From Piromyces finnis finn (Eukaryota > Fungi > Neocallimastigomycota), in contig MCFH01000021.1 in the NCBI GenBank assembly GCA_002104945.1, positions 248,001 to 312,000 of the forward strand: a stretch of 64,000 nt of DNA. The letters are read 5' to 3'. A model generated the notes under the pieces. That model was given only the letters and a program-made list of their open reading frames with translations. It was not told where the DNA came from and made no database searches. Positions 9,213 to 24,428 of this stretch are shown one piece after another (position 1 is the first letter of the stretch; each line of letters starts with the position of its first letter). Position numbers and translations under genes: made by a program.

Positions 9213-10697
9213 ATGACTACAACATATAAAACTGTTTCAGAATCTTTCTCAGATTTCATTAATAAGTCACAGTACTTTAACCCATTCTTTTCATTTATAG
9301 CAGTATTTTATATATATTTTGCAATTGGTGTTCGTTCTGATACCATATGGAAATATCTTTTCTGGGTAGTAAATTGTGGTTTCTTTGCTAATCTTTTTTC
9401 AATGGCAAAGGCTTTGTCTAAAAATTTAAATTATTTTGGATTTAAATATTTTACACATTTAGTATGGTTCGAAACCATTTTATTTGGTATCAATGAATGG
9501 GGCTTTGTTTATATTAATTTTTTAAAAATAAGATCATTAATTTCTACTTTGAGAACTCGCATTTGGTCTGGTATCATTTATTCCTTATTCTTTTATACTA
9601 TGATATGTAGAATTATCATTTCATATTATGAATTAGATGAAGAAAATCAATTATTAAATGGAGAAACTCCGATAGAAAAAAGTGTCAAAATCCATACTAT
9701 TTTGTATGTGCCAATGGGTGTCATTGAATGTATATTTTTATATTTAATTATAATAAATATTATGAGTGAAGAAGATAATAAATCGAAAAGTGTTTTAAGT
9801 ATTCTTCTTCATAGTAGTTTATCAAGAATGTTTATAGGTAAGTTTAAAACAATGATCCATTAATATATATTAATAATAAATATAATTACACATCTTAACA
9901 TATACAAAAAAAAGAAAAAGCATAATTTATTAATTTTATATTATATTATATTATATTATTATTAATTTTTTAATTTTTTTTTTTTTTTTACAGTTTCTTT
10001 ATTATTATTATCTATTTCAATTTTAGTATGGTTCCCTAATACAGGAGTAACAGGGTTTATAAGAAGATTTTTATGGAGAATAAAAGGTTATCTTGGTATT
10101 ATTTTTTTAGTGGATTTATTACTTTTACGTATTGAAATCGATAATAATAAAATTATTGATCAGAATGAAAAGATTAAAAAGATTAATCTAGAAAATTCTA
10201 TTCAAAATATCACAAGAATGTATCAAACAAACAACGCTAATTCTAATTTTAACACCACAAATAATTATTCACCAACTAATTATTCACCTCATTCACGTCA
10301 ATCTATTGGAAGCTATATTCCACCTTTTTCACCCAGTAAAACAAGTGATTTTTCAACTCATCGAACCTCTTTTGAAAATGTAGATAATTCAAGGGAAAAG
10401 TTGATTAATTCACCAACGACTCCTTCTTCTTCACGCTATGTAATGTCACCTTCACTTAGAAGTCCCATGGTCACATCAAACTCTCAAAAACACATTCTAA
10501 CACATTCTAATGATAGAACGATTCGTCATCAAAGTGGTGGTGCATTTTCAGTATATAACAATGATGCTATTACCATTGAAAATTCTAATAAGCAATTAAA
10601 TACAGCTCATTCTGATAATGGTGAAATTACTGAAAATGATATTCATCAACAATCCAAATTTCCGATTTATGAAGAATCCAAAAAATTATATAAATGA
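9213..10697 (+). CDS. Orphan 7TM receptor-like protein, paralog 1 (~442 aa, 2 exons)
   Basis: Exons 9213-9837 and 9994-10697 (intron gtaagt...acag, phase 1). Seven hydrophobic segments, motifs NKSQYFNPFFS, IWKYL, NEWG, LYVPMG, SSLSRM, WRIKGYLGIIFLVD, and a Ser/Pro-rich tail. Confidence 0.85.
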
Positions 10698-12750
10698 ATA
10701 ATTATACCTGTTTTTTGTTTATACTTTAATTATTCTATATAGTTATTAAAAAAAAAATACTATGTATACAAATTATGTCATCCTAGGAAAACAATAAATT
10801 AAGTTTTTTTTTTAAAAAAAGAAAAAAAAAAAATCTATAATGTAATGTAATTTTCTGTCATTACAATGTATAATGTAGTTGTGTGTGGGGTTTTCTTATT
10901 TTATTTTTACCTAAAAATGATATAGATTTTGTTATAAAATATTAATATATTAATAAAAAAAAGAGTACATTGTTATTCTGTATGAAAAAAGTACAATAAA
11001 CTAATAATTAATTTAATATAGATGGTTTTAAAAAAGAACCATTAAGAATAGTTAATTAGGATCATCAAAATTAAGGCTAATTAAATTTGATTAAAAAAAG
11101 GAATTTTAAATACTATCTGTAAAATGTAATGTAATTTACAATACATTTATTAAAGAAATATTCTAAAAAAGAACAAAGAAAGAAAATTAAAGTTTCAGTT
11201 CTGTAAAATGTTCATACACAAAATAATAAAACATATTAAATTTAAATATCAACCTCTGGATTTTATTGGTACGATTTTGGAAACATTCAAGATAATTTTA
11301 TTAATTTTTTCTTTAAATGGATAAATAAAGGAATAATATTTCATAAATTTTTATTTTTTCATCCTTTATTAAAATAAGAATAATAATACTAATAAAAATG
11401 TACAAAATTAAAATAAAAAAAAAAAAAATTGGTATTATTAATAAATCTAAACTTTTTTTTTGTTGAAAAAAAAAAAGACTATTTAATTAAAATAAAAACG
11501 AATAGGTTAAAATTATTTATTTTATATATATATATATTATTATTATTAATAAAAATTTAATGATGATTAGAAAAAAAGCCAAATTCAAGAGGTAATAAGA
11601 TAAATTTTTAGTTGGAATGACAGAAAAAAATTTTTAATATAGAAATTTAAGTGTAATCTATCAATTAATATTTATTATTCTGAGCAGGTATATTAATTTT
11701 TTATATAAAATAAAATTAATTATAATAATAATATTATTAATATTAAATTAATAATAATACTAGATAGATACTAAATTAATAATACTAGATTAATTATTAT
11801 TATCATAAAAAATAATATTATTCTATCATTGAATAATTATTGATCATTTATTTAATCATTTATTATTTCTTTTAAAGTTTTTCATAATCTTTTATTATGC
11901 TTATTCATCCATATTTAATATTACAAAATCTATTCAATCATCTTTTTTTTTTATATCAACAAGAAATGTTTTTTTTTTCATTTTCTTTTAGTTCTTTATT
12001 AATTTTTTTATATACTGAAACTATTATTAATAATACATTTTTCGTTAAACACCCTCTATTGTATTTTAATTATTAATAAAAAAAAAAAGGTGAAAAAGAT
12101 TTCAATATTTTCTAATATATGGCCAAGTTTCAATAAATTTCTAAAACTTTTATTAAAAAGTTGATTGTTTTTTTTTTAAATCAATTTCCTAATTTAAAAA
12201 ATAATTATATTAATAACAAATTAATTAAATTAAATTAATTATTTAATGAAAATCATTTGTAGATCACTTTATATATAAACCAAATTTTAAAGATCCGATT
12301 ATATTAATATAAACATAGTTTATGGTTAAAAAACCTTAAATTATTGAAAAGTAAAGATAATATTTTTGTATTACCTTTTAATTAATCATCCATATTAATT
12401 TTTAATTAATTTTATTACACAATAATAATTAAAAATTTATTAATAGAAATGATATTAATGATTGATATATAATTATTTTTTTTTAAAAAAAATTCGTTAT
12501 TATAATTTGTGTAACCTTTTTGAATGGCTAAGAATTTTTTTTTTATTTAATTGTTTTTTCATTATTTAAAATAATATAATTAAAATCAAATATTTACATC
12601 ATTGTTGTTTAATTGACCATTAGATTTAGATTCATTATTGAAATGAAAAATTCTATCACCATTATTCTAAATATTTTGGTAAAAATTATTCGATATCTTA
12701 TTTATATATTTATATATATTTTATTTTTTGACATATACACAGTTACAAAT

Positions 12751-22786: not shown

Positions 22787-24428
22787 ATGGCTCTTTCTTC
22801 ACCATTTAATTTAATGATTACTGAATTATCCAATATGGTTAATAAAACCCAATACTTTAACCCATTCTTTTCATGGATAATTGTTGTATATACATATTTT
22901 TCAATAGGTATCCAAGGAGGAAAAATATGGAAATATTTATTCTATTTTGCCACCTGTGGTTACATAGCCTCATTTTTAAACATTATATATACCTTGGCAA
23001 AAACATTAAATTTGGACTATGTAAAGTATTTACAACTTCTTTGGATAGAACATTGCTTTTGGGGTATAAATGAATGGGGTTATATGTTTGTAAATTTCTT
23101 AAAAATTAAAGCATGTATTAACAAATTAAATAAAAAGGTATGGGATTGTTTGTTATACTTTCTATTAGCCTATACTCTTGTAATTCGTATAGTCATTGCT
23201 CATACGGAAATCACAGGAAGAGTAGATGTCTATATTAATAATAAAAAGACAGGTAAAAACGATAAATTTGATGATTCTATATTAAATTACTTTAATGGTG
23301 CATTATACTTCCCATTGGGTATTTTATGTACAGTATTCATTTTCTTAATTTTTCAAAAATTTATTACTGAAGATAATAACGAATCAAGAAATGTTCTTTC
23401 GGTTCTTCTTCACAGTACTCTTTCAAGAATGATTTTTGGTAAGTTTTTTTTGTTTTTGTTTTCTTAAAAAAATCTTGAAGAAAATATTATCATATTAAGA
23501 AAAATTTTTTATATGTAAAAAAAAAAATATCTAATTTTTATTTATTGGTTTGCTTATTTATATGGTTGTATATCTAAATATATAATAAATGTTGTAAATA
23601 ATAATTCTAGTATCATCATTATTTATTGGTATCTCTATTATTGTATTCTTTCCAAGTACTGGAGTTTCTGGATTTATAAGAAGATTATTATGGAGAATCA
23701 AAGGAAATTTAGGTATTATATTTTTAGTAGATATAATATTATTACGTATTGATCTTGACAAAAATAAGATTATTGAACAAACAAGACAAATTCAAATGAT
23801 GAATAAGAACAAAACCATTCAAAATGGATTTAATTTTGATCCATCCGAACGAACATCCCAAAATGTAAATATGAATATGGAATATACCAATAGATTGCTT
23901 ACAAACAAAAAGAATGTTAGTGGACTCTATAAGAGTTTACCGTTGGATAATGAAATTAGAGATGATGTACTTCCTTACCTAAATCATAATTCTATTGAAG
24001 GATGTGATATCAGTAAAAGTCATAATTATAATGGTAGTGGTAGTCTTGGAAGATATCCTTATTCAAATAATACCCTAGCACGTTTTTCTCGTAATTCAAA
24101 AGTTTCTGATAATATGAATACTTCCAATCTTTTTGGTTATTATAGCGTTAGTTTAACAAACTTTGAAGATAATAACAATTCATTATTAAGAAAACCTCAC
24201 AATAATCATGGATTTGAAACCATTTCACTCAATGGTCCTTCCTACAGTTCTTTATCTCATTTAAATCCTAATTCTATTAATTTAGAGAATATAGCATCCT
24301 CCTCCATTTCTTCTAATTATGGATCATTAAGCAGAACTCAATCCGTAAAAGCTCCAAGTATTTCAAATGGATCTTTAAAAAGAAAACATCCAGGCGATAT
24401 TATCATGGAAAATCCCAATTTAGAATAA
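22787..24428 (+). CDS. Orphan 7TM receptor-like protein, paralog 4 (~489 aa, 2 exons)
   Basis: Exons 22787-23438 and 23611-24428 (gtaagt...ctag, same phase-1 position). Motifs NKTQYFNPFFS, IWKYL, NEWG, LYFPLG, STLSRM, WRIKGNLGIIFLVD, and a Ser-rich tail. Confidence 0.85.

Follow-up and report, generated by a model that had tools for sequence, protein, structure and literature searches.

Four tandem genes of Piromyces finnis coding for predicted seven-transmembrane proteins with a G protein-coupled receptor-type fold

The stretch of DNA analysed here, called the window throughout, comprises 64,000 nucleotides of the genome of the anaerobic gut fungus Piromyces finnis (contig MCFH01000021.1, positions 248,001 to 312,000 of the forward strand; approximately 18% G+C). 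Between window positions 9213 and 24428 it carries an array of four co-oriented two-exon genes on the plus strand, g1 to g4, each of which consists of a pair of open reading frames (ORFs) joined by an intron. These are very probably real genes for seven-transmembrane (7TM) proteins with the G protein-coupled receptor (GPCR) fold, and they constitute a new sequence family within this known fold. We favour the reading that the encoded proteins are signalling receptors, to which we assign a probability of roughly 0.5. It is favoured because of the predicted GPCR fold and topology, the strongly basic character of the second inner loop, a long tail that is variable, rich in Ser/Thr and predicted to be cytosolic, the presence of multiple conserved paralogs and a distribution over few lineages rather than the one of a housekeeping protein. 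A previous sequence-only reading of the window had described the locus as a tandem array of orphan 7TM receptor-like genes, and its claims are taken up below together with the results that bear on them.

Predicted fold and membrane topology

The AlphaFold model of g2, which was computed with 35 family sequences, has a pLDDT of 84.1 and a pTM of 0.80; it replaced an earlier model from 7 sequences that was too weak (pLDDT 72). The model shows a short N-terminal helix followed by seven long helices (residues 34–54, 57–85, 89–121, 128–160, 164–202, 206–238 and 243–284), in agreement with the seven transmembrane segments (TM1 to TM7) that had been proposed from the sequence. Kyte-Doolittle hydropathy alone yields four to seven segments, because aromatic and polar residues are frequent in TM1 to TM3; the number of helices is therefore taken from the AlphaFold model.

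Comparison of the model with the Protein Data Bank (PDB) using Foldseek returned GPCRs for all of the 50 best matches (E 0.02–0.2, TM-score 0.33–0.61). Alignment of the Foldseek candidates with VIA-align gave Z-scores of 15.7 for the pheromone receptor Ste2, 15.5 for TAS2R46, 15.4 for P2Y14, 15.1 for TMEM87A and 13.7 for the adiponectin receptor, with class A receptors at approximately 14–15; according to the tool note, Z-scores below approximately 13 are common for helical bundles. In a search independent of Foldseek, covering 48,161 chains, the top 50 were exclusively GPCR-fold proteins. Here TAS2R46 reached a Z-score of 15.1, TMEM87A 14.4 and 13.8, class A receptors approximately 13–14 and the rhodopsin KR2 13.0, and an adhesion GPCR, GABA-B and a designed GPCR-like fold were also among the top 50. 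Altogether, 224–264 residues of the model align in sequence order at Z 13–15.7 with GPCRs of classes A, B2, C, D and T. The top 30 matches in a search of the Swiss-Prot AlphaFold models were all GPCRs, and the ESM Atlas search gave TM-scores of 0.58–0.68 to fungal 7TM proteins of unknown function, adhesion GPCRs and olfactory receptors. No competing transporter or enzyme fold was found among the structural matches. The structure prediction and Foldseek search proposed in the sequence-only reading have thus yielded a GPCR-type seven-helix bundle, with no confident match to a characterised enzyme or transporter.

The nearest neighbours found with a protein language model (scores 0.86–0.89) are the Pfam families DUF7703 and DUF6534 and Ascomycota clusters annotated as "integral membrane protein". 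These are likewise uncharacterised fungal 7TM proteins, with lengths of approximately 250–450 amino acids and predicted structures that match at TM-scores of 0.51–0.68 (ESM Atlas, AlphaFold DB). However, none of the 35 family members matches DUF7703 or DUF6534 in Pfam, and families of this type belong to the Dikarya, whereas the proteins described here are from zoosporic lineages.

The distribution of charges over the loops supports a topology with the N-terminus outside and the C-terminus inside. In 25 family members the loop between TM3 and TM4 contains on average 5.0 Lys/Arg and 0.2 Asp/Glu residues (net charge +4.9); because this loop is almost purely basic, it is predicted to be cytosolic, as is the Ser/Thr/Asn-rich C-terminal tail. 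In nine remote relatives the same loop has a net charge of +2.9, and there the four segments predicted to be inside are all net positive while the four predicted outside are approximately zero or negative. Only about 30 residues precede TM1, the loop between TM4 and TM5, predicted to lie outside, varies in length, and the C-tails consist of 35–42% Ser, Thr and Asn, compared to 18–20% in the core. The very short N-terminus, the basic loop after TM3, the length-variable TM4–TM5 loop and the Ser/Thr/Asn-rich tail noticed in the sequence were thus all borne out. The same is true for every motif quoted at that time: NKxQYFxP[FI]FS, YxYxxIG, IWKYL, NEWG, NFxKI[RK], LYxPxG and WRxKGx[LF]GIIFLxDxxLLRI[DE] are present in g1 to g4.

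Gene models and the shared intron

The four genes start at positions 9213, 13529, 17938 and 22787 and share the same orientation, and each is split into two pieces by the ORF track, as described previously. In each pair the first ORF overruns a G/GTAAGT or G/GTAATT site (slashes mark splice junctions) by a few codons, downstream of the peptide S[ST]LSRxxx, and upstream of the second ORF there are a pyrimidine-rich stretch and an AG. All in-frame AG acceptors were tried by script for each gene, and in four of four genes the first in-frame acceptor restores the homologous junction S[ST]LSRxxx/[VI]S. Since the length of exon 1 is 3n+1 bases in all four genes, the intron is in phase 1. An intron at an identical phase-1 position in TM6, as claimed in the sequence-only reading, therefore holds in all four splice models.

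Exon 1 of g1 (9213–9837, plus strand as for all following exons and introns) extends from the start Met to the first base of the split codon and codes for TM1 to TM5 and the start of TM6. It is followed by an intron of 156 nt (9838–9993, GTAAGT..CAG) and by exon 2 (9994–10697), which encodes the remainder of TM6, TM7, a 182 amino acid Ser/Thr/Asn-rich tail and the stop codon; the whole protein has 442 amino acids, and the GenBank model of 442 amino acids has the same span. The g2 gene consists of exon 1 (13529–14204), a phase-1 intron of 139 nt (14205–14343, GTAAGT..TAG) and exon 2 (14344–14777) with a tail of 93 amino acids, giving a protein of 369 amino acids. Its spliced product is identical, letter for letter, to the P. 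finnis GenBank protein BCR36DRAFT_352332 (P0001 in our set). For g3 the corresponding elements are exon 1 (17938–18583), a phase-1 intron of 142 nt (18584–18725, GTAATT..TAG) and exon 2 (18726–19420) with a 179 amino acid tail; the protein has 446 amino acids. The g4 gene has the longest tail with 221 amino acids and codes for a protein of 489 amino acids (exon 1, 22787–23438; phase-1 intron of 172 nt, 23439–23610, GTAAGT..TAG; exon 2, 23611–24428). All of these models combine ORFs with the predicted splice sites.

GenBank already contains models at the positions of g1 to g3 that have the lengths found here (442, 369 and 446 amino acids) and are labelled hypothetical proteins; g1 to g4 are therefore not new as genes. 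For g4, two separate models are given, BCR36DRAFT_257804 (132 amino acids, partial), which covers only parts of exon 1 and omits 22910–23155, and BCR36DRAFT_583434 (275 amino acids), which corresponds to exon 2. Homology to g1–g3 and to the orthologs supports a single g4 gene of 489 amino acids; the split in GenBank is thus wrong, and the single-gene model of the sequence-only reading is preferable to it. Pairwise identities between the four proteins are 38–49% (BLASTP, E 1e-52 to 1e-106), well outside what chance would give. tBLASTn searches of the whole window found no fifth copy and no pseudogenes or fragments within the array.

Use of the intron is suggested by contigs from homologs. For one homolog of 410 amino acids (P0085), three Logan contigs from three runs (L009–L011) lack exactly 209 nt that are present in genomic contigs. 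These 209 nt start with GT, end with AG and split a codon after S-L-F-R-T-F-F in phase 1, which is the same site as in the window. The three Logan contigs are 98.9–99.9% identical to the metagenomic genomic contigs (L012–L014) and collinear with them over approximately 2 kb, including the untranslated flanks. Another contig (L001) carries a g2-type gene with the joined junction AATGA/TTTCA, the bases predicted for spliced g2. In addition, prokaryote-style gene calls on metagenomic contigs of other gut fungi end 211–239 amino acids into the gene, from which it is clear that the intron position is conserved. The indirect evidence that the shared intron is used is thus good; its basis is contigs of homologs rather than reads on the window genes.

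The spacers between the genes contain near-perfect (AAT/ATA)n microsatellites, located at 12751–12835 after g1 (28 copies), at 16246–16462 after g2 (72 copies) and at 19847–19998 after g3 (51 copies). These repeats give rise to the pseudo-ORFs for poly-Ile and poly-Tyr among the listed ORFs. Downstream of the array, a region on the plus strand (28286–32828) contains an ORF of 1035 amino acids without a Pfam match followed by an ORF with an SH3 domain, and a gene of the mitochondrial carrier family (Mito_carr, E 7.5e-56) is located further downstream on the minus strand (37139–38092).

Age and taxonomic range of the family

The maximum-likelihood tree places g1, g2, g3 and g4 in a well-supported clade each (SH-aLRT 96–100). 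Sequences from Neocallimastix, Anaeromyces and Piromyces sp. E2 group with g2, three Anaeromyces copies form the sister group of the g1 clade, and g3 and g4 each pair with contigs from other gut fungi. The ratios of nonsynonymous to synonymous substitution rates (dN/dS) for ortholog pairs are 0.13, 0.20 and 0.18, indicating purifying selection; paralog ratios are unusable because dS is saturated (1.2–1.6).

Gene order is conserved in Piromyces sp. E2, where the g2 ortholog comes after the g1 ortholog with both on one strand, and largely conserved in Anaeromyces. At least five named family members are located on one 142-kb contig of Anaeromyces robustus. The g1-type copies there adjoin a divergently oriented gene for a class C-type receptor with SBP_bac_8 and 7tm_3 domains (L018, 442–3252, minus strand, next to P0037/P0033), and two g2-type copies lie side by side further along. 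Three of the A. robustus sequences (P0033, P0035 and P0037) form one clade of additional, species-specific g1-type copies. Together with the paired g2-type copies they show that tandem duplication does occur. The P. finnis window begins with the 5′ part of a class C-type receptor gene (2–2139, minus strand), which is not a member of the family; its 7tm_3 match (E 6e-7) is just under the Pfam cutoff, and it is divergently oriented approximately 7 kb upstream of g1. A class C gene is thus found divergently upstream of the g1-type end in both P. finnis and A. robustus, and the neighbourhood is therefore conserved across genera. The P. finnis genome has at least seven family genes, three or more of them on other scaffolds (P0030, P0034 and P0039). 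Judged by tree, substitution ratios and gene order, the family is small and old, evolves slowly, has kept its synteny and has occasionally gained further duplicates; the tandem layout goes back to ancient duplication preserved in synteny rather than to rapid expansion.

An exhaustive HMMER scan of 1.84 billion representative proteins gave 44 hits at E up to 0.001. The strong hits with species names are from Piromyces finnis, Piromyces sp. E2, Anaeromyces robustus, Neocallimastix and Orpinomyces; the other strong hits are very AT-rich gut metagenome or transcript contigs. Seven hits are weak: two are adjacent genes of the chytrid Nowakowskiella sp. JEL0407, one is a gene of the ichthyosporean Abeoforma whisleri and the remaining ones are further contigs. 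Against the deeper profile A4 the weak hits are collinear across all seven helices with scores of 33–63 bits, and the residues W59, E107 (TM3), K117, R145 (TM4), S218, K256 and D266 (TM7) are kept in the remote homologs. D266 occurs in 23 of 23 sequences, and conservation of the buried TM3 Glu is almost complete. Word-indexed searches with the remote alignment A5 and the combined alignment A6 returned at least 8000 low-complexity candidates and added only three sequences (P0100–P0102) among the matches listed. The family had been called lineage-specific; this stands insofar as all strong named hits are gut fungi, but collinear remote homologs occur in a chytrid and an ichthyosporean.

The two Nowakowskiella proteins (P0053 and P0054) are products of the neighbouring genes HK098_002803 and HK098_002804 and share 51% identity; tandem pairing is therefore also found outside the gut fungi. 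The tail of P0054 carries an IQ calmodulin-binding motif (Pfam IQ, 24.4 bits). A remote subgroup (P0056, contigs L015–L017) is intronless and highly diverged. Its contigs have 18% G+C and stem from gut samples that also yielded a g3 ortholog, and it therefore probably represents a second and divergent branch within the gut fungi. P0055 and P0100 also belong to this intronless divergent branch.

Class membership and possible function

The family was not assigned to a known class by sequence searches. Several marginal matches were considered and rejected. A Mediator chain found in the PDB at E 0.5 with a family profile is a chance match. The one score above a Pfam cutoff is that of exon 1 of g2 alone, which reaches 23.2 bits against Tmemb_185A (PF10269, cutoff 23.1), while g2 residues 1–285 give only 19.6 bits; since any match to this family occurs in just three of 35 members and TMEM185 is absent from the structural matches, this is ascribed to chance or composition. 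Scattered sub-threshold Pfam matches, among them DUF5392 and one faint 7tm_2 match in Abeoforma, are also taken as chance.

Membership in class A is not indicated, as no 7tm_1 match was obtained with the 35 members at E up to 5 (the threshold used for all 35-member searches below). In place of the class A motifs E/DRY and NPxxY, the family has NEWG..NFxKIR in TM3 and D..LLLRID in TM7. A Neocallimastix g2-type ortholog carries the automatic UniProt name [quoted passage not shown], which could not be reproduced. The class T receptors TAS2R46 and TAS2R14 and class A receptors (P2Y, GPR34, chemokine receptors) resemble the model in fold (Z 13–15.5, TM-score up to 0.60–0.61), and the TAS2Rs also share the very short N-terminus and the lack of the class A DRY and NPxxY motifs. 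However, identities are 5–13% without common motifs, neither 7tm_1 nor TAS2R is matched in Pfam, and the family described here is fungal and protist, not animal.

Class C-type receptors of gut fungi have solute-binding-protein (SBP) or pectin-lyase ectodomains of 200–1600 amino acids and a Pfam 7tm_3 domain (Seppala et al., 2016, PMC5168858). They are 7TM proteins from the same organisms, and one adjoins the array in both Piromyces and Anaeromyces. The family members, in contrast, have no ectodomain, with an N-terminus of about 30 amino acids, and none of them matches 7tm_3. The published inventory lists 34 GPCRs for P. finnis, 32 of class C and two of the "rhodopsin/Dicty-CAR" type (PMC5168858). 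The motifs of the family are absent from the GPCR sequence tables of that paper, and its two rhodopsin-like sequences begin differently. No description of this 7TM family was found in the literature searched. As far as those tables go, the family is thus absent from the gut-fungal GPCR inventory, and the earlier view of it as uncharacterised is sustained; it is an orphan family with a predicted fold of the 7TM GPCR type.

Two further assignments to known 7TM families were rejected. In a microbial type I rhodopsin, the retinal-binding Lys would be expected in the middle of TM7, but the sole conserved TM7 Lys of the family, K256, lies where the helix begins on the outer side, ten residues ahead of the buried D266; the KR2 match (Z 13.0) is at the bottom of the Z-score plateau. 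Against a hydrolase of the PAQR/adiponectin-receptor type (Z 13.7), which would have an inside N-terminus and a conserved His3-Asp zinc site, stand the charge bias, which favours an outside N-terminus, and the lack of a conserved His cluster, the single His of the family (H178) being lost in the remote relatives. The view that hallmarks of Ste2, class C receptors and PAQR proteins are missing is supported by the negative STE2 and 7tm_3 profiles and by the missing His cluster; in addition, no Pfam receptor family is matched.

In the reading that we favour, g1 to g4 would act as cell-surface receptors that sense a ligand in the outer half of the helix bundle. The resulting change would be relayed via conserved polar residues of the inner half, namely E107 in TM3, S218 and R222 at the start of TM6 and D266 in TM7. 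These are located roughly where the class A DRY, ionic-lock and NPxxY switches sit, with depths estimated from helix positions and not from distances. The signal may then reach a cytosolic partner, which would be either a heterotrimeric G protein or a phosphorylation-dependent adaptor that binds the tail. The four subfamilies would represent four long-standing specificities and not a fast-evolving repertoire.

Several observations weigh against a role as receptors. In Pfam, no family is recovered consistently and no receptor family at all, whether the exons, the 35 members or the remote matches are searched, and the family profiles A4 and A6 detect no significant chain in the PDB by sequence. 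The Z-scores of 13–15.7 form a flat plateau over Ste2 and class A, B2, C and T receptors that favours no class. This plateau also spans TMEM87A, the adiponectin receptor and a sodium-pump rhodopsin; TMEM87A is not a GPCR, and the adiponectin receptor is a hydrolase with the opposite topology. The Foldseek E-values are only 0.02–0.2, and the proposed polar network of TM3, TM6 and TM7 is based on depth estimates from helix positions rather than on measured distances.

It is possible, at odds clearly below even, that the proteins have the GPCR fold but do not signal, and function instead in trafficking, lipid handling or ion conduction like proteins of the TMEM87A/GOST, TOM1/THH1 or GPR137 kind; the Glu in TM3 and the Asp in TM7 would then bind an ion or a polar head group. 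TMEM87A ranks with the very best matches by structure (Z 15.1 with VIA-align, 14.4 and 13.8 in the Foldseek-independent search), its 7TM domain superposes as well as those of GPCRs, and the language-model neighbours include THH1/TOM1/TOM3 and GPR137_N clusters. The sole residue that is invariant throughout the superfamily is the buried Asp of TM7, with the buried Glu of TM3 nearly so, and slow one-to-one orthologous evolution suits a housekeeping role as well as a receptor. TMEM87A, however, has a large luminal GOLD domain, whereas only about 30 residues precede TM1 here, no GOLD or other luminal domain is matched and sequence similarity is missing, so that membership in TMEM87/GOST itself was rejected. 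For THH1 and GPR137 the Atlas gives low scores (0.75–0.76). Moreover, a housekeeping protein should have a wide distribution, but the 1.84 billion proteins include no family member from most fungi or from any animal, and four to seven or more diverged paralogs whose cytosolic tails are long, variable and Ser/Thr-rich are more receptor-like.

We consider it very unlikely that the family represents extremely diverged relatives of the fungal class D (Ste2-type) pheromone receptors that were kept in zoosporic lineages. Ste2 (PDB 7ad3, 7qa8) is the best or second-best solved structure in the comparisons in which it could appear (Foldseek ranks 1 and 2 with TM-scores of 0.47–0.55, the highest at rank 1; VIA-align rank 1). 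It aligns in the same helix order at Z 15.7 and with the lowest rmsd of the leading matches (4.0 Å over 242 residues, 11% identity; 14–16% in the Foldseek alignments). STE2 clusters are among the nearest named language-model neighbours (0.83–0.84), and the general architecture is alike, in that the 7TM part follows a short N-terminus and ends in a long Ser/Thr-rich tail. The lead of Ste2 over TAS2R46 (15.5) and the class A and other receptors is within noise, however, and Ste2 is outside the top 50 of the Foldseek-independent search. No sequence relationship is detectable: Pfam STE2 (PF02116) matches none of the 35 members, and the family profile recovers no Ste2 chain from the PDB at E up to 10. 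The signature motifs NKxQYFxPFFSW, NEWG, NFxKIR, STLSR and WRxKG..D..LLLRID are the family's own, and Atlas scores below 0.9 are leads only.

The original proposal of a rapidly diversifying, lineage-specific chemoreceptor repertoire, expanded in tandem like an odorant-receptor cluster, is consistent with the tandem arrangement, the extra A. robustus copies and the variable TM4–TM5 loop, but is largely refuted by four old subfamilies with orthologs elsewhere, dN/dS values of 0.13–0.20, gene order conserved between genera, an array devoid of pseudogenes and the small size of the family (at least seven genes in P. finnis, 44 clusters worldwide in 1.84 billion proteins), and is very unlikely.

Anaerobic gut fungi reach fresh plant fibre as swimming zoospores, and we know of no receptor by which these zoospores seek plants. 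A further-reaching and doubtful extension of the receptor reading would be that the family is a previously unrecognised opisthokont GPCR class older than fungi, which persisted solely where dispersal stages are motile or amoeboid (gut fungi, chytrid, ichthyosporean) and lost from Dikarya and animals, and whose four subfamilies steer gut-fungal zoospores to plant-derived attractants. The present analysis provides a definition of the family (alignments A4 and A6), a confident GPCR-fold model, a corrected model for g4 and a set of buried charged residues (E107, R145 and D266) that can be mutated, and the range reaching to a chytrid and an ichthyosporean makes the family testable. Should the proteins not signal, they would be one more orphan 7TM family; if they do, they would add a new class to the fungal GPCR catalogue, one that dates from before the fungi.

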